From contig NW_021835492.1 of NCBI RefSeq assembly GCF_006345805.1, forward strand, positions 1 to 39,810: DNA of 39,810 nucleotides. The letters are read 5' to 3'. A model generated the notes under the pieces. That model searched no databases, was not told the origin of the DNA, and worked only from the letters and a program-made list of their open reading frames with translations. The translations under genes and the position numbers were made by a program. This document shows, one piece after another, positions 1 to 39,810 of the stretch. The stretch is from Octopus sinensis (Eukaryota). Numbering within the stretch: the stretch's first letter is position 1; each line of letters opens with the position of its first letter.

Positions 1-196
1 TCCATCCTCATTAAACCACTATGCACATAAAATGGACATTTCGATTTCCCCCTTTTGTCCCATTTGCTGTGCTGACGAAGACACAACTGCCCATCTATTC
101 CGCTCTATTCCGATCTTAATTTGTCATTCACTCCCTGGAGGTCCTATGGGAGCAAACTGGGAGGACGCTGTTGTTTCTGCTGGTCTCATTATCTAA
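1..196 (+). mobile_element. 3' fragment of a non-LTR retrotransposon ORF2 (C-terminal zinc knuckle), copy 1, cut by the window start
   Basis: Reads LNHYAHKMDISISPFCPICCADEDTTAHLF, resembling the LN-Y-H...CPxC...DTxxHLF C-terminus of LINE ORF2 proteins; frameshifted. Confidence 0.6.
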
Positions 197-246
197 TGCT
201 AGGTGAAATGACACAAAACAACACAAATTAAATAACAGAAAAAAAA

Positions 247-3060
247 TCATGCAGAAGCATATGCAGACAGTAATTCGTTATAAAATTCTGTCATTTTGTC
301 CAAATATATGGATAGAGTGTCCATAATATCCACTACAGGCTGGGCTTCCGTGCTGGGAAGGACTACGGGAATACTCTCTATAATTTTGATTAAATCTTTA
401 GTCGTCGTGACGACCATATTCTTCAATATGTCGAGAAAGTCAGTATTAATTGGCACAATCGAGTTGGCCACTGCCCTTATCTTGTGTCGCATATTGTCCA
501 TCTGATTACTTACACTCTTAACCACTCCTTTGCACTTTTCCACGTACTCCTCCGCAGATGGACACGACTCCTAAACATGACCCTCTCCATTCACCATCGG
601 AGACACTTCCATGAATGACTGACCACTTGACACAGCCACCACACACTCCGACGATTTGCGGGCTAACCTACACATCACCCGACCAGTCAAACATGTTCAA
701 ATCAACCACCTCGGTCAATGCGGGCAACTATGAATGTAACCACCTCGGAATACCTCGTCCATCAAATCCAATGGAAATGACTCCATTTTATTTAAGAGGG
801 CCTTACAGTCACGAATGATTGCTTACACTTTTGAAATCAATCACCTCCTTGTTGTATTTCAGCAATGCTCGCAAACGAATTGTCTGACTGACACTCATCT
901 GACTGGCCAGTTCGTTAATACTCCGAATTCTCTCATCGAACGGGAAGGGTTGGGAGTGGTACTCGGGCAATGGGGAGACCACCTCCATCCCCGGCACTTC
1001 CAACCCTCCGAACAAGTCCCTTTTCAACACCTGTTCGATCTCTCCCTTACAGATATATAATTCGACACAACCAGGTGAGATATGAGCTCATTCGTGAATT
1101 TTGTGTCATCATCCCCCATTCTTCCACGGAATTGTTCCAAGTCCATCTCCAACAGGCGAAGACCCTCCAAGTCTGATCGGACACACTCTCTCAGTCCATT
1201 CTCGAGTGGGTCAACAGGAGGGACACGTGATAACTCGTGTTTGGGAGCACATTCAATGAGATCCAACACCGTTTGTTTGGCATCATCCATAAATTGTTTT
1301 AAATGGACAATTCCCAACTGTCTCTTCTCCTCGTGGGCAATCAACTCACATTTGGTGGAGTGGAGACCCACAGCCCGCTCATGAGAACGAATAATTTTGC
1401 GAGACAACTGTCATTATTAAGCCAATAACCCACCTTGTTGACTGTACGCCTCGATTTGTAACTGGCACGTTCGTATGTATTGAACTGGGAGTCCAATTCG
1501 CCCACCCGTGCTGTCGAGGCTGCCAGTTTGTCCCCCAAAGTGTTGGAAATGGACTCCAATTGGGCCACAGTCTTCTTGGCAATGTCCAACTCGGCCTCCT
1601 TCTCCCTGAGAACACACGTCCTCGCATTGAATTGGTCATCAATCTCAAGTAGTGAGTACGTAACCAACCATTTGAATACTCTCGACAGCCAACTGATAAC
1701 ATTCCTCCAAATAGGCGACAGTCTTAGCCTGGTGGGACAGTTCGAGGGTGAATTCCCTGGGAGTTAATGACAGGAGTACTCAAAGTCGTCCTCCTTCATC
1801 AACACCCCCTTCCCCGTCGTGGCACATGTCAGTTGCTCCTTCAGTCGGTCGATCTCCCGTTCGAACATCTCCAATACACCACTCATCCAAACCTCCAGCA
1901 AACTGCCTCGTTGGAAGTCCTCGTTCACTTGTGGCTTGTTTTCGATTGTTTCTGCCAGACTGGCATACTCCAGTGTGCTCAGAGTCTCCTCGAATGACGA
2001 GGTGGATGGGGATATCGTGGCTATTATCGTCGTCCGAGTACGCCCGCCCAGCGAATCTTCAAGAATCCTCGTCAGTTTGCTCTCTCGGTAGGGAATGTGC
2101 TTGGCCTTTTCAGTCAGAGCTGTGATCACTCGTCCCAATGTCAGCAAACTCTGATTTATCTTCCCTACCGAATCACTCAACCCAAATAACCTGCTTCCCG
2201 TGCACGTTGGTTAACCGACCCCGATCTCCCCACATTCTCACTCCCCGCCAAATCCACCAAATTAAACTTGCTTGTTTTGACCACCCTTTCTCCATTATGT
2301 GAGTGGAAGGAGTGGAGGGTCACCACGAACACAGCATGTGACCGACTACACTCACATCCACGCCTACCTCGACTTTTGATTGCACTCCGTCGCCCCCACT
2401 TGACGGTTCCTGACCCCCAATTGGAGTTGTCTGTACATTTGGTCTCGTCCTTCCACTCTGACCTGCGTCACTCCCTTGATGACCACCGAATTGGCCTACT
2501 GATGGGCATTACTCACAACTTTGGAGGTTATGTCCCGAAAGAGACTCAATTTGGAGACACACTGGGAGAACAGGTCGAAAATCTCCTCGTTGTATATCTC
2601 GATGTAGGACATCTCGATGTAGCCGTCTTTGTCCTGCAGTGAGACACCAACCATGCCTTTGTGAGGTCAAACAAGTCTGAGAGGACTCGGGGGATTATTC
2701 CCGCGTCTTTGCAAAGTCCGGACTCGGAGGATTCCAGATTGCCCTCCATTGTGTGGGTCTTTCCGGAGGCAGTCTGTCCGTAGGCAAACACAGTGCAGTT
2801 GTACCCCGTGTGGACATCTTGGACCATTGGGGAGACAATGTTGTTGTAGACGTCCTCTTGGGTGGTTAGATGGTCAAATATCTCTGAGAACTGGTATGTC
2901 TTCCGTCTGTCAAAAGAGGGGTCGAGTATATATAGTTCGTTACTATTCTCGATTCTTAACATTTTTGATTTGTTTTCTTTCTTGTTTAGTGGTCTATTTT
3001 CTGTAAAAATAACTTTTACCTTATTCGTACGAAGGATTTGATACGCTCACAAGACTCCAT
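247..3060 (-). CDS. KIF11: Kinesin-5 (BimC/Eg5) mitotic motor; 15 exons, 14 introns of 22-26 nt, 822 aa
   Basis: Motifs [76 protein letters not shown]. Removing 14 introns (345 nt; e.g. 2994-3019, 2634-2656, 2496-2519, 2346-2367, 2165-2190, 1869-1892, 1757-1779) gives one open frame of 2469 nt from ATG 3060 to TGA 247. Confidence 0.92.
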
Positions 3061-3340
3061 TTAAAAATTAATTTATTTTGCGCCAGTTTTATAATTAAAC
3101 AATTTTTTGACAATATTAGTTTTTATTTTAATATTATTTGTTTTTAATCTTCAAAATTTAATTAAAAGCAATCTGATGTTAAATCTCTCCAAAACGAGTA
3201 TATGTACTGACATTTTCCTTAGTACTTTTAAAAATATAAAATACATATAATCTAAACTAGATATGATTTATGCTCAATAAATTTAATATTTATTTTAATA
3301 AATTATTATGCAATTAATCATCACTCTTACGTTGTGGTAA
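3061..3340. promoter_or_regulatory. AT-rich 280-bp divergent promoter region shared by kinesin-5 and the MADS-box gene
   Basis: Lies between head-to-head ATGs at 3060 (-) and 3341 (+); no specific motif identified. Confidence 0.4.
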
Positions 3341-3693
3341 ATGCCAAGCGGAAAATCGAAAATATCCATAAAATACATAGAAGATAAAGTCCGCCGACGC
3401 CAGTCACTGACAAAAAGAAAACAAGGACTAATGAAAAAAGTGTTTTTAATTTGTGGGGAATGTAGGCTTATGAACTGAATGTCCTCACTCGGAGTGAAGT
3501 AGCCATCGTAATAGTTTCCCCCAACCATAAGGTCTACGTGTTTGCCACAGAAATGCTGGATTCCTTCGTGAGTCCGGATAATGGGCCCAATCCATTAATG
3601 GACTATTTGCTCACAAAATATAATCTGGACTACTCCAGCATTATGCGTGAGGACACATCCAAATACTCTGAGGACGACCCGGAAATACTTTGA
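3341..3693 (+). CDS. SRF-like (type I) MADS-box transcription factor, 108 aa, one 26-nt intron (3440-3465)
   Basis: Spliced product MPSGKSKISIKYIEDKVRRRQSLTKRKQGLMKK|AYELNVLTRSEVAIVIVSPNHKVYVFATEMLDSF... matches the SRF/Mcm1 pattern KRK.G.MKKAYEL..LT...V.....S....VY.FAT; stop TGA at 3691-3693. Confidence 0.9.
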
Positions 3694-3844
3694 ATCATAT
3701 ATTAATACGTCTTTTTAATGTCGGATTTATGTGGTTTATTATCATATCTACACGCCTTTCATGTCTCCCTCCTTAGTTTATAATTGTGTGTAGATACACT
3801 GCATGAATGTGTTAATTTATAAAAATAATGAGCTAAAAATCGTT

Positions 3845-5227
3845 CTAAAAGTGACTTTCGAACAACTCAGGGCGGAGACCTCTAAGCCAGTCGGCCATTC
3901 TGTGAATAATAGCAAACAACAAACATGGCCTTTCCACACTCATTGGTCACCAAGTCAGGAAGAATGAACTGGTCATAGAAAGATGAGACTTGTCCCTGGT
4001 TATATAATTGGTAATCACACCTCAAATTCAGTCCAATCAAGTTGTGGCAGTCCATGTTCTTCCCTTCTCTGATTATAGGCAGTGTAATTGACCTACAAAC
4101 GTGGACAGGACAACCAACACTGTCCAACAACAGTCCATAACTGGGGGCAATGGGGGCGAACACCTCCAATATACAAACTACAGTACTTTCCTCAGCATGA
4201 ACAACTGCCCCAAATATGGTGGCCCAATCAGCCCTCTGCACAGGGAAATGACCACGCCTACAATAACATGACAAATCACCAATCATCTTCCTTATTTGGT
4301 GCAACAAAAAACTCTGTCCAACAATACGAACAGGCACGAATTGAATAGTCCCCGAGTCCCCCGGAAGGGACAGAGGAGGACACACCTCGACCGAGAAAAT
4401 ATGTCGGTGGTTGGTGGCCATCCTCATTTCCCTACAGTCAGCACACTCTCCTACGTCCGGGCAGTAAAGTTGTGGAAATTGTGAGTGCCTCTGAAAGCCT
4501 GCAGATACTCGTCCGCCTGCATCAGCTGGGCCTCTGAGGACTCAGGAGTGGGCTAAACCTGAAATGGCAAAGTTTCTCCACTCGAACTGGAACATTGACA
4601 CAAATGGGATACCAGGTCGGCCACTAGGGCAAAGGACGGGATATGGTATATATATGTTCTTGAACTACACAGGGTACGACTGCTGAAAGCTTTGGACACT
4701 TTTTGGGCACCTGGGAAATTTAAATTATATTTATTTTATATTTTGTCAATAATTAATAATAGATATTACAAATAACACGAATGTCAGGTGGGAGAACTGC
4801 ATTTATGTCATCAATTTTGTTTTCGACGTGTGAAGTCAGCTATTTTCACCACTAATAACAATACTTTTAACGAGACCATATTCCTCAGGGCAGACACCCC
4901 CTTGTCTGTACGGGCAGCCCTCTGGAACTTCAACTACGAGTAATTAAAGCCTCCAGACTTTGTCGAGGTTATCAATGTTGATCACATTTACTTGTAGAAG
5001 TGCGTCTATAAGCTCACCCTCTATAGTTCTGACACCCACCATCCTATCGTAGGTTTACTGAATAAGTACTTTTGCATTCCGTAATAATTGGATCCGTTGT
5101 AGCAGAGCACCAGTCCGTATTTTTTCTTATTTAATTGCCACAACTATTTTTGTTATTTTTAATATTGGACTATTCTATTGGAGGTTTTCGGCTTGGGTGA
5201 CTCATGTTGAGTGTCCACGGAGTCCAT
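3845..5227 (-). CDS. PUS1: tRNA pseudouridine synthase A family (PUS1-like), multiple micro-introns
   Basis: KKYGLVLCYNGSNYYGMQ, RTIEGEL, FQRAARTDKGVSA (catalytic Asp), GQSFLLHQIRKMIG, APSYGLLLD after removal of roughly 25-27-nt GT-AG introns; ATG 5227, TAG 3845-3847. Confidence 0.88.
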
Positions 5228-5511
5228 TTAACACGACCACACGAACGCACGAGATTGATAGTTTATTTAATAATTCGACTTTTAAGATGTTATATTTTTG
5301 AATACTTTCCTATTATTTAAATAAATTTGTTCTATTAAAATTTATAGTTAATTGAAACGTTTTAGAATAAAAATGGATCATATCAATATTATAGTGTGAG
5401 AAATCATTATAAACGTAGTTGTATTAAAAATAGCCATATCCAATTATGTTGAATTGATTCTTCGATGATGATGGAAATTAAAAGCAAAAAATATGACAAA
5501 AATAATTTTGT

Positions 5512-6154
5512 ATGGCAAAAGATGATGTATTGCAACTTAAAACAAACAATTTCAAAATTTATGTTATGGGAAGTAAAATGGTGGGGAAAACGGCTCTAAT
5601 TTCGAATTATTTGTGGAATAGAAAACTAAATGGATATGTCCCCACCATCGGCGACACATACGAGGCAAAACTGGAGAACATAACTTTTAAACTCGTTGAC
5701 ACTGCCGGGACTTTGTTGTGTCCGATGATGATGAAGATCGCAATAATGGAGGCTGATGTCATCATTCTTGTTTATAAAAACGACGACGAAATGTCTTTCA
5801 AAAAAGTGAACGACATTTTTAACCAAGTCTTATCGTTGAGAAATAGCTATCCTCCCTTCACAGTTTTTTTAGCCAATCAGTTCGAATATAACATAATAAA
5901 ATAAAAACGGAATCCCACTTTTCCACCGTCATTTATAAGTTCTCGGTGATGGACGACACATTAGTCACTATTTTTTTCAAAGAACTGTTGCTCGGGTACT
6001 TAAAACCTGCTAGTTTCATAACAAATTTTGCAATTTACGGAAGGCGTCCCAACCATCAAACAATCTGAACAGCAGATTGTATATCAATGCTCGAGGCCGT
6101 TCTAATTTTTTAAAAATATATTTTCCACAAAAAAAACATGAACGATCAGGTTGA
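5512..6154 (+). CDS. Divergent Ras-family small GTPase, paralogue A, copy 1 (two 1-nt deletions relative to copy 2; probable consensus errors or a broken allele)
   Basis: G1 GSKMVGKT, G2 PTIGDTY, G3 DTAG; intronless. Intact 214-aa version at 37502-38146; this copy lacks one A near 5896 and one near 6018. Confidence 0.85.
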
Positions 6155-6227
6155 TTCTTAATAATTACTAACATTAATTACTAACATTTCTGGAACTATT
6201 TCTCAATTTTCACTGCTATTTTTAATA

Positions 6228-7868
6228 CAGTAAACCTCTGTGCTCGCCATTTTCGGGACCGAAGAAAAAATGGCGAGCAATAGAATTTGGCGAGCAATAG
6301 AATAATCAATAAATTTGTTGACATTGAAATTTGAAAACATGTCCGTTTTCGATACTTTCCGATCATAAGTGAACTTCCAAGTCATATTTGAGCAAAGAAA
6401 CAAAGAGAATAGAAAAAAATTAAAAAGAAAAATTACTAAAAAAATCTTTAATAGTTTTTTTTAATTTAGCCATATTTCTAATAACGGTTTCGATTAGTTC
6501 CAACGAATTATATCAAAATTTTCATTTTGATAAAAGAATGACTTTATTCTTTTCAACATTTTCAAGCCTTCTCTGAATTCACATGAGATTCGTCATTATG
6601 AGTATCTTCATCGTCATATTTGTGTGGGAAAGAATATCCAGCAATATTAAGTAATCTTCAATTTCATCTATTTCGGTAAATTCATGATAATAAAATCATC
6701 TTTATCACCGGGTCCAATATTTTCAAGATATTTACCATTTGATCATAATTATCAATTTCAACAGTTGGTCTTCGAATTGATTTTCACATTCGATCCATTT
6801 TGAATGTCCGAAACAATTGCAATTGTTTTGGTCGTTACTTTTTCCAGGCAAAATATGTAAAAAGAAGACCGTCTTTTAAGGTTATTTTTTTATGAGCTTC
6901 CAGTGGATTTTCTCCATTTTCAATTTTTTCTAACATTAACTCAAATTAAGTTTATTAAAATGTCCTTTGAAGGATCTAATGATTCCTTGATCCATTGCCT
7001 GTAGAATTGTTGTAGTCTTCGAAGGTAGGTAAAGAACTTCAATTGACTGTAAATCAGCGTAAATTATGGGATGGGCATCGATCCACAACTAAAAGAATTT
7101 TTCGTTTTTTTTTAGATGCATATCCATGTTAAAAGCCATTCGTTAAAAATTTTACTTGTCATCCATGCTTTTGGTGAATGACAGTAATCGACAAAATTTT
7201 GACTTTAAAATTTTTAAGAGCAGGTTCTGGAACTTTCCAATCATAAGTGGAATTTTTTGTCTGTCCCAGTCATATTTGAGCATAGCAACAAAGAAAAATC
7301 TAAAAAATAAATTAAAATTAAACCGTTCTTTAAGGTTTATGTCCATGTTCACCTTCTGAAGGGGAGATTTGTAAAAAATCCCACAACTAAAAGAATTTTT
7401 CGTTTTTATAAAAATAGTTTAACCAAAAAAATATTTTATGTCCACGTCGAACCTTCGACAAATACTTTTGAAGGGATAGATTTGTAAAAAATCCCAGTTT
7501 CATCAGCGTTATAAATGTTTTCAGCATTATATTGTTGAATCTTTGCAGAGATCAAAGAAGTAATGCATCATTTCTTGTTTTGATCAACTGCAGTAGATCC
7601 TGATTCTCCATGTACGCAATAATGCGACGTTTTCATTAAAAGACAATCTTGTGCACTTACGCATGTTAAATTTAGCGTGGTTGAAATATTTTATATAAAA
7701 AATAGTTTAACAAAAAAATTTTTTTAAAAATTAATGGCGAGATTTAGAAAATGGCGAGCATAGAAATATTTATTAAATTTAACTAGAAATTTTTAATTTT
7801 TTGAAAAATATGTGGCGAGCAATAGAGGTGGCGAGTAACAGAGGTGGCGAGCACCAGAGGTTTTACTG
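6228..7868 (-). mobile_element. pogo/Tigger-type Tc1/mariner DNA transposon, internally deleted and degenerate, 1,641 bp
   Basis: TIRs CAGTAAACCTCTG... (6228) and ...CAGAGGTTTTACTG (7868); flanks TA (6226-6227) and CA (7869-7870); subterminal TGGCGAGCAATAGA repeats; transposase fragments IYNADETGIFY, LLLCSNMTG, RKILLVVD, YLPSKTTTILQAMDQGIIRSFK; absent from repeat copy 2 (single TA at 38218-38219). Confidence 0.92.
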
Positions 7869-8387
7869 CATCTATGTTGATTTAATGAATGAAAGAGGTC
7901 GTTTAGAGATACGTTCTAGAATATGGTTTATGACGGGTGTTTCGAGATGCGGCCTCACTAGTCTAGGCTGCTACGAAACGTGTTATATTAAAATGTTGAA
8001 ACTGTGGTCTCCTCGTGCCTCGTTTCCCAATTTTAATACCAAACAAATTATTAATAACAAATTTTTTGATAATTTAACGATCCCGTTACACATATTTTGA
8101 AACTTCCACCAATCTGTCTTTGAGTAATTAAAAACGTGTTTTAATTTTCCTCAAAACGTATTTCTCATGCAAATTAAAAAAGATAGACATTCCATGACTT
8201 ATTTGCCCCACTGTATTTCATCTTCTTTCAAAGTGTATTTCTGGGATTTTGTTGAGCAGTTTTGACGATTTAAGCACTAAAAATCGTTAAATTGTGTATT
8301 TATTATAAATAGCCTCATCTAATTATTCGAGATTGATTCTTCGGCAAAAATCGAAATAAAGTTAAAAATACCGACAAAAATGGTTTT

Positions 8388-9026
8388 ATGACAAGCAACG
8401 GGGTGTTACAACTTAAATCAAACAATTTCAAAATATATGTAATAGGTAACCAAATGGTTGGGAAAACATCTTTAATTTCGAATTATTTATGGAACAAACA
8501 ATTGAATGCATATATGGCGACTATCGGCGACACATACGAGGCAAAACTCGAAAATATAACTTTCAAATTGGTCGACACTGCTGGTGCTCTATTGAGCCCG
8601 ATGATGTTGAAGATTGCAATAATGGAGGCTGATGTGATCATTCTCGTTTACAGGAATGGCGATGAGTCGTCTTTAAAGAAAGTGAATGAAATATTTAGTC
8701 GTGTCTTATTATTGAGAAACGTTTATCCCCCCTTTACGGTCTTTATTGCCAATCAGTTCGAAAATGACGCACACAAAATAAAAACAGAGTCATATTGTTC
8801 CACTCTCGTTTACAAATTTTCTGTGATGAACAACAAACTGGTCAGAATTTTTTTTAGAGAAATGTTGTTTGAATATTTAAAGCCCAATACTTTAAGTAAA
8901 CAATTTTACAATCTACGAAAAGCGTCTCAACCTTCGAAAAATCTCAGTAAAAGATTTAGCGTTAATGCTGAATCCAAAAAACTTACCACAATATTTAGAA
9001 AAATGTTCAGGTATAAAAAGGCCTAA
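8388..9026 (+). CDS. Divergent Ras-family small GTPase, paralogue B, 212 aa, intronless
   Basis: G1 GNQMVGKT, G2 ATIGDTY, G3 DTAG; spacing like the RASD/DIRAS group; G4 reads NQFE; no CAAX box. Confidence 0.88.
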   Translation: MTSNGVLQLKSNNFKIYVIGNQMVGKTSLISNYLWNKQLNAYMATIGDTYEAKLENITFKLVDTAGALLSPMMLKIAIMEADVIILVYRNGDESSLKKVNEIFSRVLLLRNVYPPFTVFIANQFENDAHKIKTESYCSTLVYKFSVMNNKLVRIFFREMLFEYLKPNTLSKQFYNLRKASQPSKNLSKRFSVNAESKKLTTIFRKMFRYKKA

Positions 9027-9358
9027 ATACGTGGTTTATTACTAACAGACTTAAATTACTAACCGTTCTAAAATATGCTCAAATTTTTCATTTTTTAGAA
9101 TTCTAAATTTGACTTGAAAATGTTTTTTGTTATGTTTTTATTGTATTGAATACAATTAATAACAATTTGGATATATTCATCATGTAATTATTATTTGTTT
9201 ATGCTCATTTTCTGACAATTTAATGGAGAAGCGTGAACAAAAATATATTTGTTGTCTTTTAAAATGGACTATGAAAATGAATTCTTGATAATTCGATTAA
9301 ATAAGTATCATAAAACTTGTGTTCAAAAATTTAAGTTTTACATGATATTTCTGCAGCC

Positions 9359-9941
9359 TTACCATGCTGCATCAAGTAGCCTTGCTTCTGTGACTAATTT
9401 CTGCTCATTTTTAAATGATTTTTCCGCATTCCTTTCAAGTTCAGCGTCTTAAAAAAGCATCGACTTTGAATATCATCGTGGTAACTACTTTATTTGACAA
9501 ACACTTTCAGTTCATCTATAAATGGTTTGTTATGTATATAAGGGATCCATCATTTGGACTATCCATTAGCACTTTCGGGTAAGTTTCACTAGAGAACACT
9601 GTATCCCAAAAGAAGGCTCCCATTCTCACTGTTAAAATATCGCTCAGTACACACCTTAGGACCATAAAAAAACCGTTTGTCGGCTGAGTAGGTCTTACCC
9701 GAGTTAATGTGAAAAAGTTGATGAAACTTCAAAGGAAATCCCTAATTACAAAGATCAACTTCAAAGTCCTTTAGCAGCCACTCGCACATTGTCGTATAGT
9801 CATCATCAATCTCCTCACATACGAGCACCAGTTTAAAGTGAATGTCATTCCATTTATAATGACATGGCTACTAAATACCATAAGGTTACTTAAGACAGTA
9901 GATGAGTCTCTCCAGACTTCAAAAATGAACAAATCCAACAT
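9359..9941 (-). CDS. Possible hypothetical intron-containing gene, unresolved model
   Basis: Coding-like composition and joinable frames (MLDLFIFEVW..., KWNDIHFKLVLVCEE..., DAELERNAEKSFKNEQKLVTEARLLDAAW*), but the model needs one 18-nt intron and has no recognisable domain. Confidence 0.3.
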
Positions 9942-10026
9942 GAATTGAGCATTACTGTGAGTTACAAATTGTAATCTTATATAAGAATAAAAGAAAAATA
10001 TGACTATCAAAAAATGTCAGCGCCCT

Positions 10027-26987: not shown

Positions 26988-28020
26988 TCAACAATTCGAT
27001 TCAAATAAAAGTGGAATGTATGACCCAGTCATCCTCCGCCCGGTGACTGGATCTGTCCTCGACAAAAAGGGGAAAGACGGGTCAGCAAAGAAGACAGAAT
27101 ACCCATTATCCACCAAACACTCCTCTTCACTCGCCACCCCCAATCGACCGTCCTCAACAACACTGCCCAGTCTATGAGGAGTCACACCCCCCGACAGCAT
27201 ATCCCCCACCATCCCCCTCATCACCTCACAATTCAGCCCTGATAGTTCTCATATCACTCAAACGTGGAATCAGCTCAGTCTCAACATTATATTCCGATAT
27301 ATCAAACACTTCCTGACAAAGCAGGGACTGGAGGATGACAGTCCCCACTCTGCGAAGTGATTCCCCCCACTGAGGAGTGCTCTCCTGGGGGTGGACGACC
27401 TGATAACTGACCTCCCCAAAGTCCCCCAGTTTGAAGAAGGCGTCGAACCCGAAGAACACATTGTCGGAGGATATGTCCCCATGAATTATGCCCAGTGAGA
27501 TGAGATACACCACAGCCTAAACTGCCAGGCCAGATTACCCTCGAAATGTCCACAAACAAGTCATGGCTGAGCATATCCCCCCGAAAATAGACCGACTGGA
27601 TGGTGTACATGCGAGTGAGACTGCCAGTCCTTCACTTGGCTAACCTGAGTTGACAGAGCTCTATTTGCATGTACAGTTGGCCTAATTGCACAAAGGCAGA
27701 GAAGAGGGACACACAGTTTGTGTGGGAAATGGTCGACATGGCTCGCACTTCTTCCAATCGGTGTTTTCTATGGTTAGAAGTGGGGTACTTTTCCTGGAGG
27801 GAGGAGAATGGCTGTGTGTACATTTTGATGGCGTACTTCTTTCCCTCACGTTTGGACTCGGCTGACCATATCTGCGGGTTATTGGGTGACCATACCAGGG
27901 TGTATGACCCAAACCCGATTCTCCGAATATTTTTAAACTCCTGTTCGAGGTATGGGTTGTGCAGTCGGCAGTCACGTTTATTCCCCTTAAGGTAACATTT
28001 AAAGTGACCTACCGAATACT
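26988..28020 (-). CDS. Myt1/Wee1-like protein kinase, degenerate C-lobe; start codon unresolved
   Basis: YLEQEF..IRRIGFGSY, YAIK, EEV, LYMQIELC, IIHGDISSDNVFFG, KLGDFG, co-linear with PKMYT1 after removing 21-25-nt introns; both ends approximate. Confidence 0.75.
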
Positions 28021-28081
28021 GGGTATAGTTTATTTCAGTAGTAGAATATAATCAATTTCCCCATAAGTAGTGTCATTAGGG

Positions 28082-30256
28082 CAGTGTTTCTCAACCTTTT
28101 TTCCCTGAGGCCCATTTTCAGGGTCATATAAAATCTCAGGCCCATTGCCTTTAATAAAACTTTGATTAACAAAAAAGTATTTTTATTAACATAAAAAATC
28201 TTATTAAAATGTCAATGACTACACTGCTCTTGATGTCTATCTATCAATTTGTCAAGTTGAATTTCCAGATCTTGGTTCAACCTCAAACGTAAGTCTCCTC
28301 TCTTCTCAATCTGCAATTGATTGCGTTTTTTTGTGAGTAAATCGTTTGTTGCAGAAAATCCTGTCTCAACCAACCAAGTGGTGGGAAAGCCAAGTACAAA
28401 CGGAACAACTTTTTCAAAGAGTAATGGATGAATCGATTCTACTTTCATCCATCCATATAAGCCATCCCTTTCAATATTTTTCATTAATACTTTGTTCTCC
28501 TTCAGTTCAAGAAGTTCTCCAGCAATAATAGGATCAATGTCTTTTTCACTTAATACGTCAAAATGTGCTATATCTATAATCCAACTAGGCGGATTCATTT
28601 CGATGATATCTTTAAATCTTCTAGTCATATCTTCTTTCAAGCATTTCAAGTGGTCAGTGCAGCTTGCGATTACTTCTGAGCTCGGAGCAGTTTTGGCAAA
28701 ATTACAAAAATAAGCAAATTCATTTTTTTGAAGATGCATCTTCCAGAGACATAACTTGTTCAAAAAAGAGCGTACTTTCTCAGCACTATCTATCAGATTA
28801 GCATTTCGCCCTTGCAGTGTCATGTTCAGTTGGTTGACATGTGCGAATAAGTCAGCCAGGTAAAAAATCCTTGCTTTTGTATCGTTGTTATTTATCACTG
28901 AAAACAAAGTCTCAGCTTTATCTTTCTGCTTCTTGCTACAAGCTTGTGTTTTATGTCATGAACAAAAATAAGAACCATATCCCACATTTCAGCAAGACGA
29001 ACTAGGGAATTTCCTTTGGAAAGCCATCTCACTTCAGTGTGCATGAGGAGTCTCTGGTGGTCCTCATGTTCACATAAATGTTGAAATAGGCGGTCATGCA
29101 AAGCATTGGCTTTGACAAAATTCACTGTTGAAACAGCGACTTTCAATGCATGTTCCATGTCATCATTGAGAGATTTAGCACAAAGATGTTCTCGATGGAT
29201 GATGCAATGAATTGCCAATATATGAGGGGCAACTTTTTTTAATTTAGCTACAAAGCCATTCTGTTTGCCGGTCATAGCGCTGGCACCGTCTGTTGCAATC
29301 TGCAACAGATTTGACAGAGGGATCCCATTATCGTACAGATAGTCGTAAACAGCCGCATATATAGTGTCGCTTCGTGTGTCAATCAACTTTTTTATAAATA
29401 ACATTTCTTCATGAATTGCCATTGCATCAATATATCGGACATAAGTAAGTAATAAGGCAGAATTGTTGATTGTTGTCTCATCAATTTGTAGTGAGAACTT
29501 AGAAACTTTTAATTTTTCCACAAGCTGTTTCTCGAGGTTTTCTGCCATTTCAATTTGCCTTCTCTTCACTGTGTCATTAGACAATGGGATTTTTTGTAGA
29601 ATGTTGGCAGCCTGTTCTCCTAGCAGTTCTTTAGCACAGATCAACATTGCTGGCTTCACCAGACGTTCTGCAATTGTATGTGGCTTCCCCACCTTAGCAA
29701 CCAGTTCACTCACTGCATAACTGACTTTTAGTGTCTTGTTATTATGCTCATTTGCTTTTTTTAAGCAGAATTCTAAAGTTTTTGGAGCATTCTTTTGGCG
29801 TAACTCCACTTTCTTCCTGAAATAGCTGCGCTCCTTTCCAACAGAAGCAGGATGCTTCAACTGTTGATGGGCGAACAATTTTGATTTCTTCATGGAAACA
29901 TTTGTCATTACTAAGCCACAGTCCACACATTCAGGCCTCTTAGAATCAGCACTTGATGGGATGAAGCCTAGTAATAAAAAATCAGTCTGGTATTTGCGTG
30001 TAGTCTTCCTTTTTCCTTGTGTACTTTTGACATGAACTATACAATCAGGCCTATAATATTTAAATTTAAATATGACAATATCATTAAATTAAAAACAAAT
30101 CAAATCAATTTGAAAATAATAACGAATAAAGATTTATTAGTATTAGTATTAACATATTTTCTTGAGGCCCACTCCAGGCCCAATTAAATCTTCAGGCCCA
30201 TTTCAAAATTTCTCAGGCCCACAAGTGGGCCTGGGGCCCAACGTTGAGAAACACTG
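28082..30256 (-). mobile_element. hAT superfamily, Buster-type DNA transposon, 2,175 bp, both ends intact
   Basis: Perfect 14-bp TIR CAGTGTTTCTCAAC; flanks CATTAGGG (28074-28081) and ACTTAGGG (30257-30264), both nnnTAnnn; GGCCC subterminal repeats at both ends. Confidence 0.95.
28212..30033 (-). CDS. Buster/hAT transposase, about 607 aa if two 1-nt A-run deletions are corrected
   Basis: BED finger (PECVDC...HQQLKH), FSLQIDETT, ATDGASAM, HCIIHRE, EVRWLS, LVETGFS; frames break only in A-runs near 30025 and 28945. Confidence 0.88.
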
Positions 30257-30370
30257 ACTTAGGGCAGCATATGCAAAGTACGCAACCACACTAGAACTTA
30301 TTCAAATATCCGCCGCAATCAAATAAATTTATTAATTAATTTGAGATAAAATTCAAAAGTCCTTGTAAAA

Positions 30371-31769
30371 TTATAAAGACTATAGAAATATAAAATCGAA
30401 CTAAAAAAGAGTCAGTTTCAATTGCCACGGCGTTGAGGGGATTCACCGAGTTCCAAATAAAAGATCAAAGCCAACCAATATCCGGATGACGTCATCACCA
30501 TCGACAATCCTGGGAAGTGTGTACTCCCCTTCTGAATAGCACAAGGACAGTCCAGCCAACCCATACATCGTGTGATACAAATCAGCCACCCTACAGTCCC
30601 CAGAATGACTAACGTGCCAGGCTTGTCCCTCAGTCCGTCCCCCGTCTGTCCACAACACACCAAATACTGCGACAGTCCAGCTGGAATAATCAGACTGGCC
30701 TACCACAACTGAACAGTCCTCCACCCCCCAACGCCCGAACGAGTGAGAACATGAGCTGCCCCAACCCAGAAGGAGTAGCAGGTGTCCACCAACTTATTGG
30801 GTCGTCCATTGAAGCCCCCTCGAAGCACATTTGTCTCCGACTCAGCCACCGCTGAATGTCACCACTCCACTCACCAACAGACCAGACAAATCACATTTCC
30901 CTTCTTCCCCAATAATTGTCAGACCCGCAATGGCACAGAAGGAGTATGAGCCGTGTGCCTCTGCTTGAGGGACAGCCCCGAACCCCCCTTCGTATGTCTG
31001 GCACTGGAGGATGTAATCGGCCACTCCCTCGGTCAGTTGGGGGTCGAGGATGTCCAGGCATTGGGCAATGGAGAGGACACAGTAGGAGGCTCTGCATTCG
31101 AGGGAATGGACTACCGAATGTCCACTTCCCCGTCCTGTTGGAGGCAGAACGAGCCGTCGGGGAGTTTCAGGCTTAGAAGAAAGTTTTTCATTTTTTGTTT
31201 GTCGACGTGATGGAGGGCGTGTAGGAGGGAGAGGGTGTTTATGGCTGCATAGGAGGAGGCCACATGTCCGAGTTGTCCCTTTCCGCCTTGAAATACATTA
31301 TAATGATAAAATACCTCCGAAACCTCCGCTTTGTGGGTCATATGAGTCATCGATTATAAACTTGATGGCTCTAACATTGTCATGTCAATTTAAACTGATT
31401 TCTCACTTTCGGAGGCAAGGACACCCCCAAAATAGCCAGAGAATTCAAAATCCAAAAGCAAAGCCACGATTGACTGCAACTAAGTTTCTAATTCTCAAAT
31501 AATAAGCACATACTTCGAGGCAGGAAGGCAGATGTTTAATAGATTTGAGCAAATTATTCGAAATGGATTTATATTTGAGAACATATGCATTTTTGTCCAA
31601 ACTAAACTTGCAATAATGAGTGTACTTTTCATTAAGGTACTCATGGAATGCTCTCGAACACAACTTCTCTGTTGATTCCTGTCATTCATTAAGGGGAATT
31701 AACTTGGTGAATATGTGTGGGGGTCGTCCCCCCTTTTGTTCGGTTTTTAAACTGACAAATTCGATACAT
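30371..31769 (-). CDS. FNTB: Protein farnesyltransferase beta subunit; micro-introns; 3' end approximate
   Basis: WLCFWILNSL, GQLGHVASSYAAIN, GEVDIR, CQTYEGGFGAVPQAEAHGSYSFC, RQMCFEGG.NGRPNKLVDTCYSFW, GLRDKPG, DLYHT; ATG 31769. Confidence 0.88.
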
Positions 31770-31845
31770 TCGTCGCACCTCACTCAACACAATTTATTAA
31801 GGCTAACTATTTAATTAACTTTATTAAATAGTCCTACTAAAATTG

Positions 31846-32186
31846 ATGAACTGCACCAATGAAGAGAATTTGATATCTACGTCAGGAATTCTTAAGCTGA
31901 CGCCTAACTCTGTGCTCGATAAACCTCCTCCTGACGTTCACCCTTCTAAATTGCTTCTCGATCGTTCAGCTCAGACAAACTTGGCTCGTTTCCATCCTCA
32001 TTAAACCACTATGCACATAAAATGGACATTTCGATTTCCCCCTTTTGTCCCATTTGCTGTGCTGACGAAGACACAACTGCCCATCTATTCCGCTCTATTC
32101 CGATCTTAATTTGTCATTCACTCCCTGGAGGTCCTATGGGAGCAAACTTGGAGGACGCTGTTGTTTCTGCTGGTCTCATTATCTAA
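31846..32186 (+). mobile_element. 5'-truncated non-LTR retrotransposon ORF2 3' fragment spanning position 31991
   Basis: KPPPDVHPSKLLLDRSAQTNLARF, then after a frameshift LNHYAHKMDISISPFCPICCADEDTTAHLF and SLEVLWEQ, resembling LINE ORF2 C-termini. Confidence 0.65.
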
Positions 32187-32236
32187 TGCTAGGTGAAATG
32201 ACACAAAACAACACAAATTAAATAACAGAAAAAAAA

Positions 32237-35050
32237 TCATGCAGAAGGATATGCAGACAGTAATTCGTTATAAAATTCTGTCATTTTGTCCAAATATATG
32301 GATAGAGTGTCCATAATATCCACTACAGGCTGGGCTTCCGTGCTGGGAAGGACTACGGGAATACTCTCTATAATTTTGATTAAATCTTTAGTCGTCGTGA
32401 CGACCATATTCTTCAATATGTCGAGAAAGTCAGTATTAATTGGCACAATCGAGTTGGCCACTGCCCTTATCTTGTGTCGCATATTGTCCATCTGATTACT
32501 TACACTCTTAACCACTCCTTTGCACTTTTCCACGTACTCCTCCGCAGATGGACACGACTCCTAAACATGACCCTCTCCATTCACCATCGGAGACACTTCC
32601 ATGAATGACTGACCACTTGACACAGCCACCACACACTCCGACGATTTGCGGGCTAACCTACACATCACCCGACCAGTCAAACATGTTCAAATCAACCACC
32701 TCGGTCAATGCGGGCAACTATGAATGTAACCACCTCGGAATACCTCGTCCATCAAATCCAATGGAAATGACTCCATTTTATTTAGGAGGGCCTTACAGTC
32801 ACGAATGATTGCTTACACTTTTGAAATCAATCACCTCCTTGTTGTATTTCAGCAATGCTCGCAAACGAATTGTCTGACTGACACTCATCTGACTGGCCAG
32901 TTCGTTAATACTCCGAATTCTCTCATCGAACGGGAAGGGTTGGGAGTGGTACTCGGGCAATGGGGAGACCACCTCCATCCCCGGCACTTCCAACCCTCCG
33001 AACAAGTCCCTTTTCAACACCTGTTCGATCTCTCCCTTACAGATATATAATTCGACACAACCAGGTGAGATATGAGCTCATTCGTGAATTTTGTGTCATC
33101 ATCCCCCATTCTTCCACGGAATTGTTCCAAGTCCATCTCCAACAGGCGAAGACCCTCCAAGTCTGATCGGACACACTCTCTCAGTCCATTCTCGAGTGGG
33201 TCAACAGGAGGGACACGTGATAACTCGTGTTTGGGAGCACATTCAATGAGATCCAACACCGTTTGTTTGGCATCATCCATAAATTGTTTTAAATGAACAA
33301 TTCCCAACTGTCTCTTCTCCTCGTGGGCAATAAACTCACATTTGGTGGAGTGGAGACCCACAGCCCGCTCATGAGAACGAATAATTTTGCGAGACAACTG
33401 TCATTATTAGGCCAATAACCCACCTTGTTGACTGTACGCCTCGATTTGTAACTGGCACGTTCGTATGTATTGAACTGGGAGTCCAATTCGCCCACCCGTG
33501 CTGTCGAGGCTGCCAGTTTGTCCCCCAAAGTGTTGGAAATGGACTCCAATTGGGCCACAGTCTTCTTGGCAATGTCCAACTCGGCCTCCTTCTCCCTGAG
33601 AACACACGTCCTCGCATTGAATTGGTCATCAATCTCAAGTAGTGAGTACGTAACCAACCATTTGAATACTCTCGACAGCCAACTGATAACATTCCTCCAA
33701 ATAGGCGACAGTCTTAGCCTGGTGGGACAGTTCGAGGGTGAATTCCCTGGGAGTTAATGACAGGAGTACTCAAAGTCGTCCTCCTTCATCAACACCCCCT
33801 TCCCCGTCGTGGCACATGTCAGTTGCTCCTTCAGTCGGTCGATCTCCCGTTCGAACATCTCCAATACACCACTCATCCAAACCTCCAGCAAACTGCCTCG
33901 TTGGAAGTCCTCGTTCACTTGTGGCTTGTTTTCGATTGTTTCTGCCAGACTGGCATACTCCAGTGTGCTCAGAGTCTCCTCGAATGACGAGGTGGATGGG
34001 GATATCGTGGCTATTATCGTCGTCCGAGTACGCCCGCCCAACGAATCTTCAAGAATCCTCGTCAGTTTGCTCTCTCGGTAGGGAATGTGCTTGGCCTTTT
34101 CAGTCAGAGCTGTGATCACTCGTCCCAATGTCAGCAAACTCTGATTTATCTTCCCTACCGAATCACTCAACCCAAATAACCTGCTTCCCGTGCACGTTGG
34201 TTAACCGACCCCGATCTCCCCACATTCTCACTCCCCGCCAAATCCACCAAATTAAACTTGCTTGTTTTGACCACCCTTTCTCCATTATGTGAGTGGAAGG
34301 AGTGGAGGGTCACCACGAACACAGCATGTGACCGACTACACTCACATCCACGCCTACCTCGACTTTTGATTGCACTCCGTCGCCCCCACTTGACGGTTCC
34401 TGACCCCCAATTGGAGTTGTCTGTACATTTGGTCTCGTCCTTCCACTCTGACCTGCGTCACTCCCTTGATGACCACCGAATTGGCCTACTGATGGGCATT
34501 ACTCACAACTTTGGAGGTTATGTCCCGAAAGAGACTCAATTTGGAGACACACTGGGAGAACAGGTCGAAAATCTCCTCGTTGTATATCTCGATGTAGGAC
34601 ATCTCGATGTAGCCGTCTTTGTCCTGCAGTGAGACACCAACCATGCCTTTGTGAGGTCAAACAAGTCTGAGAGGACTCGGGGGATTATTCCCGCGTCTTT
34701 GCAAAGTCCGGACTCGGAGGATTCCAGATTGCCCTCCATTGTGTGGGTCTTTCCGGAGGCAGTCTGTCCGTAGGCAAACACAGTGCAGTTGTACCCCGTG
34801 TGGACATCTTGGACCATTGGGGAGACAATGTTGTTGTAGACGTCCTCTTGGGTGGTTAGATGGTCAAATATCTCTGAGAACTGGTATGTCTTCCGTCTGT
34901 CAAAAGAGGGGTCGAGTATATATAGTTCGTTACTATTCTCGATTCTTAACATTTTTGATTTGTTTTCTTTCTTGTTTAGTGGTCTATTTTCTGTAAAAAT
35001 AACTTTTACCTTATTCGTACGAAGGATTTGATACGCTCACAAGACTCCAT
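32237..35050 (-). CDS. KIF11: Kinesin-5, second copy
   Basis: Same exon structure at offset 31990; six SNPs (three synonymous, one intronic, L>F, A>P under the splice model). Confidence 0.92.
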
Positions 35051-35330
35051 TTAAAAATTAATTTATTTTGCGCCAGTTTTATAATTAAACAATTTTTTGA
35101 CAATATTAGTTTTTATTTTAATATTATTTGTTTTTAATCTTCAAAATTTAATTAAAAGCAATCTGATGTTAAATCTCTCCAAAACGAGTATATGTACTGA
35201 CATTTTCCTTAGTACTTTTAAAAATATAAAATACATATAATCTAAACTAGATATGATTTATGCTCAATAAATTTAATATTTATTTTAATAAATTATTATG
35301 CAATTAATCATCACTCTTACGTTGTGGTAA

Positions 35331-35683
35331 ATGCCAAGCGGAAAATCGAAAATATCCATAAAATACATAGAAGATAAAGTCCGCCGACGCCAGTCACTGA
35401 CAAAAAGAAAACAAGGACTAATGAAAAAAGTGTTTTTAATTTGTGGGGAATGTAGGCTTATGAACTGAATGTCCTCACTCGGAGTGAAGTAGCCATCGTA
35501 ATAGTTTCCCCCAACCATAAGGTCTACGTGTTTGCCACAGAAATGCTGGATTCCTTCGTGAGTCCGGATAATGGGCCCAATCCATTAATGGACTATTTGC
35601 TCACAAAATATAATCTGGACTACTCCAGCATTATGCGTGAGGACACATCCAAATACTCTGAGGACGACCCGGAAATACTTTGA
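35331..35683 (+). CDS. SRF-like MADS-box factor, second copy (intron 35430-35455)
   Basis: No differences from 3341-3693 seen. Confidence 0.9.
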
Positions 35684-35834
35684 ATCATATATTAATACGT
35701 CTTTTTAATGTCGGATTTATGTGGTTTATTATCATATCTACACGCCTTTCATGTCTCCCTCCTTAGTTTATAATTGTGTGTAGATACACTGCATGAATGT
35801 GTTAATTTATAAAAATAATGAGCTAAAAATCGTT

Positions 35835-37217
35835 CTAAAAGTGACTTTCGAACAACTCAGGGCGGAGACCTCTAAGCCAGTCGGCCATTCTGTGAATAAT
35901 AGCAAACAACAAACATGGCCTTTCCACACTCATTGGTCACCAAGTCAGGAAGAATGAACTGGTCATAGAAAGATGAGACTTGTCCCTGGTTATATAATTG
36001 GTAATCACACCTCAAATTCAGTCCAATCAAGTTGTGGCAGTCCATGTTCTTCCCTTCTCTGATTATAGGCAGTGTAATTGACCTACAAACGTGGACAGGA
36101 CAACCAACACTGTCCAACAACAGTCCATAACTGGGGGCAATGGGGGCGAACACCTCCAATATACAAACTACAGTACTTTCCTCAGCATGAACAACTGCCC
36201 CAAATATGGTGGCCCAATCAGCCCTCTGCACAGGGAAATGACCACGCCTACAATAACATGACAAATCACCAATCATCTTCCTTATTTGGTGCAACAAAAA
36301 ACTCTGTCCAACAATACGAACAGGCACGAATTGAATAGTCCCCGAGTCCCCCGGAAGGGACAGAGGAGGACACACCTCGACCGAGAAAATATGTCGGTGG
36401 TTGGTGGCCATCCTCATTTCCCTACAGTCAGCACACTCTCCTACGTCCGGGCAGTAAAGTTGTGGAAATTGTGAGTGCCTCTGAAAGCCTGCAGATACTC
36501 GTCCGCCTGCATCAGCTGGGCCTCTGAGGACTCAGGAGTGGGCTAAACCTGAAATGGCAAAGTTTCTCCACTCGAACTGGAACATTGACACAAATGGGAT
36601 ACCAGGTCGGCCACTAGGGCAAAGGACGGGATATGGTATATATATGTTCTTGAACTACACAGGGTACGACTGCTGAAAGCTTTGGACACTTTTTGGGCAC
36701 CTGGGAAATTTAAATTATATTTATTTTATATTTTGTCAATAATTAATAATAGATATTACAAATAACACGAATGTCAGGTGGGAGAACTGCATTTATGTCA
36801 TCAATTTTGTTTTCGACGTGTGAAGTCAGCTATTTTCACCACTAATAACAATACTTTTAACGAGACCATATTCCTCAGGGCAGACACCCCCTTGTCTGTA
36901 CGGGCAGCCCTCTGGAACTTCAACTACGAGTAATTAAAGCCTCCAGACTTTGTCGAGGTTATCAATGTTGATCACATTTACTTGTAGAAGTGCGTCTATA
37001 AGCTCACCCTCTATAGTTCTGACACCCACCATCCTATCGTAGGTTTACTGAATAAGTACTTTTGCATTCCGTAATAATTGGATCCGTTGTAGCAGAGCAC
37101 CAGTCCGTATTTTTTCTTATTTAATTGCCACAACTATTTTTGTTATTTTTAATATTGGACTATTCTATTGGAGGTTTTCGGCTTGGGTGACTCATGTTGA
37201 GTGTCCACGGAGTCCAT
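35835..37217 (-). CDS. PUS1: PUS1-like pseudouridine synthase, second copy
   Basis: No differences from 3845-5227 seen (offset 31990). Confidence 0.88.
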
Positions 37218-37501
37218 TTAACACGACCACACGAACGCACGAGATTGATAGTTTATTTAATAATTCGACTTTTAAGATGTTATATTTTTGAATACTTTCC
37301 TATTATTTAAATAAATTTGTTCTATTAAAATTTATAGTTAATTGAAACGTTTTAGAATAAAAATGGATCATATCAATATTATAGTGTGAGAAATCATTAT
37401 AAACGTAGTTGTATTAAAAATAGCCATATCCAATTATGTTGAATTGATTCTTCGATGATGATGGAAATTAAAAGCAAAAAATATGACAAAAATAATTTTG
37501 T

Positions 37502-38146
37502 ATGGCAAAAGATGATGTATTGCAACTTAAAACAAACAATTTCAAAATTTATGTTATGGGAAGTAAAATGGTGGGGAAAACGGCTCTAATTTCGAATTAT
37601 TTGTGGAATAGAAAACTAAATGGATATGTCCCCACCATCGGCGACACATACGAGGCAAAACTGGAGAACATAACTTTTAAACTCGTTGACACTGCCGGGA
37701 CTTTGTTGTGTCCGATGATGATGAAGATCGCAATAATGGAGGCTGATGTCATCATTCTTGTTTATAAAAACGACGACGAAATGTCTTTCAAAAAAGTGAA
37801 CGACATTTTTAACCAAGTCTTATCGTTGAGAAATAGCTATCCTCCCTTCACAGTTTTTTTAGCCAATCAGTTCGAATATAACATAAATAAAATAAAAACG
37901 GAATCCCACTTTTCCACCGTCATTTATAAGTTCTCGGTGATGGACGACACATTAGTCACTATTTTTTTCAAAGAACTGTTGCTCGGGTACTTAAAACCTG
38001 CTAGTTTCAATAACAAATTTTGCAATTTACGGAAGGCGTCCCAACCATCAAACAATCTGAACAGCAGATTGTATATCAATGCTCGAGGCCGTTCTAATTT
38101 TTTAAAAATATATTTTCCACAAAAAAAACATGAACGATCAGGTTGA
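37502..38146 (+). CDS. Divergent Ras-family GTPase paralogue A, intact copy, 214 aa
   Basis: Open ORF with G1-G3 motifs; G4 NQFE; no CAAX. Confidence 0.88.
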   Translation: MAKDDVLQLKTNNFKIYVMGSKMVGKTALISNYLWNRKLNGYVPTIGDTYEAKLENITFKLVDTAGTLLCPMMMKIAIMEADVIILVYKNDDEMSFKKVNDIFNQVLSLRNSYPPFTVFLANQFEYNINKIKTESHFSTVIYKFSVMDDTLVTIFFKELLLGYLKPASFNNKFCNLRKASQPSNNLNSRLYINARGRSNFLKIYFPQKKHERSG

Positions 38147-38734
38147 TTCTTAATAATTACTAACATTAATTACTAACATTTCTGGAACTATTTCTCAATT
38201 TTCACTGCTATTTTTAATATCTATGTTGATTTAATGAATGAAAGAGGTCGTTTAGATACGTTCTAGAATATGGTTTATGACGGGTGTTTCGAGATGCGGC
38301 CTCACTAGTCTAGGCTGCTACGAAACGTGTTATATTAAAATGTTGAAACTGTGGTCTCCTCGTGCCTCGTTTCCCAATTTTAATACCAAACAAATTATTA
38401 ATAACAAATTTTTTGATAATTTAACGATCCCGTTACACATATTTTGAAACTTCCACCAATCTGTCTTTGAGTAATTAAAAACGTGTTTTAATTTTCCTCA
38501 AAACGTATTTCTCATGCAAATTAAAAAAGATAGACATTCCATGACTTATTTGCCCCACTGTATTTCAACTTCTTTCAAAGTGTATTTCTGGGATTTTGTT
38601 GAGCAGTTTTGACGATTTAAGCACTAAAAATCGTTAAATTGTGTATTTATTATAAATAGCCTCATCTAATTATTCGAGATTGATTCTTCGGCAAAAATCG
38701 AAATAAAGTTAAAAATACCGACAAAAATGGTTTT

Positions 38735-39373
38735 ATGACAAGCAACGGGGTGTTACAACTTAAATCAAACAATTTCAAAATATATGTAATGGGTAACCAA
38801 ATGGTTGGGAAAACATCTTTAATTTCGAATTATTTATGGAACAAACAATTGAATGCATATATGGCGACTATCGGCGACACATACGAGGCAAAACTCGAAA
38901 ATATAACTTTCAAATTGGTCGACACTGCTGGTGCTCTATTGAGCCCGATGATGTTGAAGATTGCAATAATGGAGGCTGATGTGATCATTCTCGTTTACAG
39001 GAATGGCGATGAGTCGTCTTTAAAGAAAGTGAATGAAATATTTAGTCGTGTCTTATTATTGAGAAACGTTTATCCCCCCTTTACGGTCTTTATTGCCAAT
39101 CAGTTCGAAAATGACGCACACAAAATAAAAACAGAGTCATATTGTTCCACTCTCGTTTACAAATTTTCTGTGATGAACAACAAACTGGTCAGAATTTTTT
39201 TTAGAGAAATGTTGTTTGAATATTTAAAGCCCAATACTTTAAGTAAACAATTTTACAATCTACGAAAAGCGTCTCAACCTTCGAAAAATCTCAGTAAAAG
39301 ATTTAGCGTTAATGCTGAATCCAAAAAACTTACCACAATATTTAGAAAAATGTTCAGGTATAAAAAGGCCTAA
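38735..39373 (+). CDS. Divergent Ras-family GTPase paralogue B, second copy, 212 aa
   Basis: Differs from 8388-9026 by one I>M change. Confidence 0.88.
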   Translation: MTSNGVLQLKSNNFKIYVMGNQMVGKTSLISNYLWNKQLNAYMATIGDTYEAKLENITFKLVDTAGALLSPMMLKIAIMEADVIILVYRNGDESSLKKVNEIFSRVLLLRNVYPPFTVFIANQFENDAHKIKTESYCSTLVYKFSVMNNKLVRIFFREMLFEYLKPNTLSKQFYNLRKASQPSKNLSKRFSVNAESKKLTTIFRKMFRYKKA

Positions 39374-39810
39374 ATACGTGGTTTATTACTAACAGACTTA
39401 AATTACTAACCGTTCTAAAATATGCTCAAATTTTTCATTTTTTAGAATTCTAAATTTGACTTGAAAATGTTTTTTGTTATGTTTTTATTGTATTGAATAC
39501 AATTAATAACAATTTGGATATATTCATCATGTAATTATTATTTGTTTATGCTCATTTTCTGACAATTTAATGGAGAAGCGTGAACAAAAATATATTTGTT
39601 GTCTTTTAAAATGGACTATGAAAATGAATTCTTGATAATTCGATTAAATAAGTATCATAAAACTTGTGTTCAAAAATTTAAGTTTTACATGATATTTCTG
39701 CAGCCTTACCATGCTGCATCAAGTAGCCTTGCTTCTGTGACTAATTTCTGCTCATTTTTAAATGATTTTTCCGCATTCCTTTCAAGTTCAGCGTCTTAAA
39801 AAAGCATCGA

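Follow-up and report, generated by a model that had tools for sequence, protein, structure and literature searches.

The window analyzed here, a stretch of 39,810 bp, is the complete record VCDQ01007082.1, an unplaced contig of the Octopus sinensis assembly GCA_006345805.1, and both of its ends lie within the same direct repeat. On the basis of gene structure and sequence comparisons, the contig is most likely nuclear DNA of a dicyemid, a kidney parasite of the octopus, placed in the host assembly under octopus names. The repeat layout suggests either a duplication in tandem or circular DNA, and the sequence alone would fit either. Among the structures considered, we favor a chromosomal head-to-tail duplication with a probability of about 0.5; this figure also covers a partial duplication, in which at least 9.5 kb would be present on both sides of 22.5 kb of other sequence. 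The presence of parasite DNA within a RefSeq host assembly is a firmer result than the structure of the repeat.

The repeat was defined by self-BLAST of the window and by MAFFT alignment of the pair of copies. Positions 1-6227 match 31991-38219 (99.86% identity, 7 mismatches) and positions 7870-9463 match 38219-39810 (99.75%, 2 mismatches), in both cases on the same strand. The features that bear on the layout are the following.

1-9463: repeat copy 1, transposon-filled, beginning at the contig start
About 6228-7869: non-autonomous element of 1,643 bp (boundaries ±1-2 nt), in copy 1 only, flanked by TA/CA
9464-31990: single-copy remainder of the 31,990-bp unit (22,527 bp), with no further long self-match in self-BLAST
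28082-30257, reverse strand: hAT transposon of the ZBED5/FAM200 type, with terminal inverted repeats CAGTGTTTCTCAAC...
31950-32237, forward strand: putative 3' remnant of a long interspersed nuclear element (LINE), with an open reading frame (ORF) at 31950-32183, a weak zf-RVT match and an A-run at about 32229-32237
31991-39810: repeat copy 2, transposon-empty (empty site at 38218/38219), stopping at the contig end

The offset between the blocks is 31,990 up to the transposon site and 30,349 past it, matching the indels; the orientation is direct and the period constant. The period is 31,990 bp with the transposon and 30,347 bp without it, and the contig amounts to 1.24 units. A match of 7.8 kb at 99.85% cannot be due to chance. 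The alignment of the copies spans base 1 through base 39810, with neither repeat boundary in view, and copy 2, measured from the empty site, reaches 6.2 kb leftward and 1.6 kb rightward. No N runs and no long simple repeats were present in the window. Position 31991, which corresponds to contig base 1, falls within the ORF at 31950-32183; this ORF, together with its A-rich tail, looks like a LINE 3' remnant. Since position 31991 sits inside that remnant, base 1 marks an arbitrary cut.

The largest difference between the copies is the 1,643-bp segment at the transposon site. It carries terminal inverted repeats CAGTAAA(A)CCTCTG..GCTCGCCA and subterminal arrays of a 16-17-nt repeat containing GGCGAGCA, and copy 2 has a clean empty site at the corresponding position. 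Because the inverted-repeat termini meet a clean empty site, the segment represents a transposon insertion polymorphism. Base by base, the alignment also contains nine substitutions (159, 258, 795, 1306, 1342, 1420, 2051, 8221, and 8444; five transitions and four transversions), which correspond to a divergence of 0.115%, and three small indels (1 bp at 5894, 1 bp at 6017, and 2 bp at 7905). None of the substitutions introduces a stop into the reading frames that appear to be coding.

The hAT transposon offers a yardstick for the errors of the assembly. A second copy, with different flanks, is present at 2915-5089 of the 7,326-bp contig VCDQ01009566.1 of the same assembly, where its protein (P0004) is labeled “ZBED8-like”. 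The copies on the two contigs differ by no substitutions and by nine one-base indels, eight of them in homopolymer runs. This shows that the residual consensus error of these low-coverage contigs consists of homopolymer indels. By this measure, all nine substitutions that separate the repeat copies are genuine, and the 1-2-bp indels, including the two that truncate a Ras-like GTPase gene (see below), are suspect as errors. Since both the substitutions and the transposon difference are real, the two contig ends derive from different molecules or loci. On several of these points our results agree with the sequence-only reading that preceded this analysis. Its recurrence of 1-9463 at 31991-39810 with a 31,990-bp period was recovered by both alignment methods, its placement of the cut at base 1/31991 inside a LINE fragment finds support in the ORF with a weak zf-RVT match that spans 31991, and every coordinate of its nine substitutions matched in the MAFFT alignment; the three small indels are new relative to its list. 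Likewise, the transposable element insertion that it described is the segment with terminal inverted repeats found in copy 1 only, and its view of the copies as distinct molecules or loci holds, as the substitutions are genuine whereas the assembly errors are homopolymer indels.

The substitutions are not evenly spread. Seven fall in 159-2051, in the kinesin tail region, none over the next 4.5 kb, and two in 8221-8444; from the alignment, we calculated a probability of about 0.004 for the largest gap. The clustering (159-8444 in copy 1, 32149-38791 in copy 2) suggests tracts of recombination or gene conversion, or a partial mixing of the consensus.

The gene content of the unit bears on the origin of the contig. 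About 30 kb contain eight genes, with GT-AG introns that measure 21-26 nt; they are listed here, a weak candidate exon included.

247 to about 3000, reverse strand (copy 2 at about 32237-34990): kinesin-5 (Eg5/KIF11-like), introns of 21-26 nt
3885-4541, reverse strand: possible pseudouridine-synthase-like exon, a weak match under the Pfam cut-off
5512-6150, forward strand (copy 2 at 37502-38146): Ras-like GTPase A, intact in copy 2 with 214 amino acids
8388-9026, forward strand (copy 2 at 38735-39373): Ras-like GTPase B
9908-20300, reverse strand: giant gene of the VPS13 family, readable with about 44 introns of 17-56 nt
26183-26789, reverse strand: exons of an inositol monophosphatase gene
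27000-28051, reverse strand: exons of a protein kinase gene
30421-31681, reverse strand: prenyltransferase beta-subunit gene

The kinesin gene gives the clearest view of the introns. By hand inspection, three GT-AG introns of 21, 22, and 26 nt were recognized in the motor domain, and splicing them out restores the motifs NQKSSRSHAVF and EAGKINQS. The NCBI protein annotated here (P0121, “kinesin-like protein Klp61F [Octopus sinensis]”) matches both window copies at 100%, and its gene model spans only 1767-2174 and 2558-2962; as the tiny introns went unrecognized, the central part of the motor domain is missing from the model. In the VPS13 gene, a shortest-path gene model could be read from about 20.3 to 9.9 kb with about 44 introns, mostly of 17-28 nt. 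In the controls, 85 introns were required for shuffled sequence, and on the antisense strand the model came to a halt after 1.7 kb; the shortest-path approach favors short introns, and the VPS13 result is to be taken as compatibility only. Published dicyemid introns have a median length of 27 bp (PMC6543705), and a mean of 38 bp is given for Dicyema japonicum, a parasite of O. sinensis (PMC6736024). The introns of the window are of this kind, most of them being shorter than 30 bp both in the kinesin gene (21, 22, and 26 nt) and in the VPS13 model (mostly 17-28 nt).

The comparison with cephalopods leads in the same direction. No cephalopod kinesin orthologue with more than 70% identity was found: apart from the model of the contig itself, the best matches had 60-70% identity and came from arthropods and fungi. 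O. vulgaris split from O. sinensis about 2.5 million years ago, and an annotated genome exists for it. The contig does not fit an octopus origin because of its tiny introns, its gene density, and the lack of a close orthologue in O. vulgaris or O. bimaculoides. The conserved C-terminal exon of the VPS13 gene shares 40-57% identity with VPS13 proteins, and the VPS13 exons had no match at E ≤ 1e-10 in a word-indexed search. This gene thus appears strongly divergent, which fits the rapid evolution reported for dicyemids. The dicyemids had been proposed as a candidate lineage from the sequence alone, and the proposal fits both the 21-26-nt introns and the role of O. sinensis as a dicyemid host.

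No dicyemid relatives were found in the collections searched with the kinesin exons, in the word-indexed VPS13 search, or in a metagenome scan; the latter, run with kinesin, VPS13, and prenyltransferase peptides, returned distant kinesins only (30-63% identity). An exact-sequence look-up of the GTPase B protein retrieved no record. Across the whole window there were no Rfam or tRNA matches, and thus no sign of rRNA or tRNA genes. An organelle, plasmid, viral, or ribosomal DNA origin was rejected on this result together with the nuclear-type genes and their spliceosomal introns. The contig resembles known cases of parasite or symbiont contamination of host assemblies in being small and unplaced, in having a gene structure foreign to the host, and in bearing host protein names; this comparison concerns the origin of the contig, not its repeat. 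In the literature searched, we found no report of dicyemid contigs in the O. sinensis assembly.

The two GTPase genes deserve a separate comment. GTPases A and B are paralogues with 76% identity in DNA (5415-6066 vs 8296-8944, and likewise 37405-38058 vs 38643-39291), and the adjoining genes suggest an older local tandem gene duplication within the unit. In copy 1, the ORF of GTPase A is shortened to 130 amino acids by two 1-bp indels at short A runs. These indels are probably consensus errors, and we rejected the interpretation of this copy as a pseudogene, as 1-bp indels at short A runs resemble the error pattern of the assembly. More generally, given the residual 1-bp indel errors, broken ORFs in contigs of this kind should not be taken for pseudogenes.

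Coming to the structure of the repeat, two links can be followed in the sequence. One joins the prenyltransferase gene, the LINE remnant, and the 3' end of the kinesin gene (31.5-32.5 kb), and the other runs from GTPase B through VPS13 and onward to the prenyltransferase gene (9-31.7 kb). If both links hold, the block is arranged head to tail or is circular; otherwise, one adjacency within 9464-31990 is false. As 22.5 kb of single-copy sequence parts the copies, a plain haplotype mis-join does not account for the layout, and the assembly path is therefore cyclic.

The reading that we favor is a duplicated block on a dicyemid chromosome, containing the kinesin-5, the two Ras-like GTPases, VPS13, the inositol monophosphatase, the kinase, and the prenyltransferase beta subunit. 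In the simplest form, the whole unit would be repeated in tandem in at least two copies; at the minimum, a segment of at least 9.5 kb would occur again 32 kb downstream. The copies, about 99.9% identical, would lie beyond the resolution of noisy long reads, and the assembler would have collapsed their common 22.5 kb. Only the stretch around the 1.6-kb transposon would have been kept separate, leaving one contig end with the transposon and the other without it. In this process, the assembler would have collapsed the inseparable sequence and unrolled the cycle once. The assembly path would then form a cycle with a length of 31,990 bp, or 30,347 bp if the transposon is subtracted, and the contig would run around it 1.24 times. 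In this reading, the repeat with its variants, the completeness of the record, and the origin outside the octopus are observed, and the tandem arrangement on a chromosome and the course of the assembly are proposed. The extent of copy 2 on either side of the empty site may approximate how far reads recognizably different from the filled version extended.

Eukaryotic genomes commonly contain tandem segmental duplications. The window resembles recent duplications or amplicons of this class in its head-to-tail arrangement, its identity of about 99.9%, its size of tens of kb, and its content of whole genes, with few substitutions and a new transposon; unlike in those cases, the junction, the flanks, and the copy number are out of view in this contig. 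The ordinary housekeeping genes and the two variant ends are in favor of a chromosomal duplication over a circle. Several points weigh against it. The record holds neither a chromosomal flank nor a second full unit, and the location on a chromosome is inferred. A two-copy tandem normally breaks at the duplication boundaries or enters unique flanks, and a flankless contig of 1.24 units is more typical of a circle or of an array with many copies. The low and patchy divergence fits a very recent duplication or gene conversion, but it fits clonal alleles too. Furthermore, neither the word-indexed VPS13 search nor the metagenome peptide scan provided a related genome for a synteny comparison that would show the ancestral gene adjacency.

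The junction of the duplication, or a false join, would most plausibly lie in the AT-rich stretch between the VPS13 and inositol monophosphatase genes.

20200-25700: AT-rich mosaic of transposon fragments (31-33% G+C)
21270-22032, reverse strand: pogo-type DDE_1, in three frames, within the mosaic
23031-23233: local tandem repeat of about 101 bp, 93% identical, within the mosaic
24095-24478, forward strand: integrase core, within the mosaic

A fragment of a PIF1-type helicase was also read by eye in this mosaic, with no match in Pfam. No long direct, inverted, or terminal repeat was found in 20.2-25.7 kb, which contains only short fragments of several superfamilies and no positive sign of a repeat-mediated false join.

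The strongest competitor of a chromosomal duplication is an extrachromosomal circle or circular amplicon of the dicyemid, of 30.3-32.0 kb and assembled with overlapping ends, in which the filled and empty versions would be two circle populations (alleles or lineages from pooled parasites). We regard this as possible, though clearly less probable than the duplication. In long-read assemblies, circles are classically recognized by ends that overlap head to tail with no flank, as found here over 7.8-9.5 kb, and the window shares with the circular or long-unit tandem contigs of organelles, plasmids, and ribosomal DNA arrays a length of over one unit, a direct overlap of the ends, and the lack of a unique flank. 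Unlike these, it carries nuclear genes with spliceosomal introns and no rRNA or tRNA genes, and its ends differ in sequence: with nine substitutions and a 1.6-kb indel between them, they represent different molecules. Tandem arrays, moreover, give the same contig shape. The lineage itself lends the circle some weight, since both the formation of extrachromosomal circular DNA and a selective amplification of DNA in development have been reported from dicyemids (Noto 2003 and Awata 2006, as cited in PMC6543705). In the description of Zverkov et al. (2019; PMC6543705), however, the known dicyemid circles have sizes of 0.3-2 kb (median 702 bp), either lack coding sequence or contain a single mitochondrial gene, and show no conserved domains other than mitochondrial ones. 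The window is like them in its probable lineage and in that circularity is inferred from “circular” contigs (Noto et al. 2003; Zverkov et al. 2019), and unlike them in its unit of 30-32 kb, with eight intron-bearing nuclear housekeeping genes and several transposons. On this comparison, the known circles offer a weak precedent for a 32-kb gene-carrying circle. In the stricter form of a 30-32-kb circle or developmentally amplified unit with eight expressed housekeeping genes and at least two variants, the proposal is rather doubtful.

An assembly artefact appears less probable still, and we consider it unlikely. Here, a linear single-copy locus, in the order inositol monophosphatase, kinase, hAT, prenyltransferase, LINE, kinesin, GTPases, and VPS13, would have had its ends falsely joined, by way of a chimeric read or a dispersed repeat, within the mosaic at about 20.2-25.7 kb, and the contig ends would be alleles. 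Repeats make up about 49% of the dicyemid genome (PMC6736024), and very young transposon copies are present in it, as seen for hAT with 0 substitutions. Since the parasite accounts for a small part of the sample, its coverage was probably low, and the residual homopolymer indels fit this. The duplicated-BUSCO fraction of the O. sinensis assembly, 5.2%, is above that of other octopus assemblies, and a heterozygous transposon insertion would be a natural allelic difference. Against this, no discontinuity was found in the sequence, and 20.2-25.7 kb holds short pogo, integrase, and other fragments with neither a long terminal nor a long inverted repeat. Within the single-copy part, only the hAT element can be shown to be a young repeat, and it has its own target-site duplication: its flanks CCCTAAGT/CCCTAATG form a duplication of about 8 bp, with the first 6 of 8 bases identical. 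As the two flanks form one target-site duplication, hAT is a single insertion and not a join through two copies, and a false join through this transposon is ruled out. Moreover, the divergence of the ends (0.115%) is tenfold lower than the heterozygosity published for D. japonicum (1.24%; PMC6736024), a comparison in which species and sample differ.

A pure haplotype false duplication, in which adjacent alleles were retained with no other error, and a genuine feature of the octopus genome are both very improbable. The differences between the copies are allele-like, and two near-identical versions stand in one record, as in uncollapsed haplotypes; the record is, besides, filed as Octopus sinensis. 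Yet allelic false duplications adjoin, whereas here 22,527 bp of single-copy sequence lie between the versions, and a further false join within 9464-31990 would be required. The joined haplotypes offered as one option by the sequence-only reading are disfavored by this separation. The octopus alternative is at odds with the 21-26-nt introns, the gene density, the lack of close O. vulgaris or O. bimaculoides orthologues, and the octopus relatives of the hAT element, which are about 46% identical. Finally, an artefact of a missed SMRTbell adapter or of rolling-circle reads was rejected, as it would yield inverted copies and could not create the 1.6-kb insertion difference.

The hAT element, with two copies that lack any substitution between them, is by its sequence very young. 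At the DNA level, it is 93% identical to a Tara Oceans metagenome contig and 80% identical to copies in ERZ25067582, an animal genome with long introns. These identities hint that the element has spread between host and parasite or across marine animals. Neither of the two close relatives led to a dicyemid assembly. In ERZ25067582, the CDK7 exons lie about 5 kb apart, which indicates an animal with a large genome, and the other close relative (P0001) is carried on a 3.7-kb Tara Oceans contig, which was of no help.

Whatever the structure, at least one contig of a RefSeq-annotated octopus assembly contains parasite DNA, here labeled as an O. sinensis protein (“Klp61F”). Host labels on parasite DNA can be a source of error in comparative genomics and in claims of horizontal transfer; at the same time, such contigs represent free long-read data for a dicyemid. 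Dicyemids are known for chromatin diminution and for small circular DNAs. If the chromosomal tandem duplication is true, the repeat would be a structural variant of an ordinary type, in the little-known genome of a parasite. If instead the circle or amplicon is true, it would be the first large gene-bearing extrachromosomal element in dicyemids, captured by chance in the long-read assembly of the host, and would represent a far larger class, with genes, of the amplified or circular DNA whose presence in the somatic cells of dicyemids has long been suspected.

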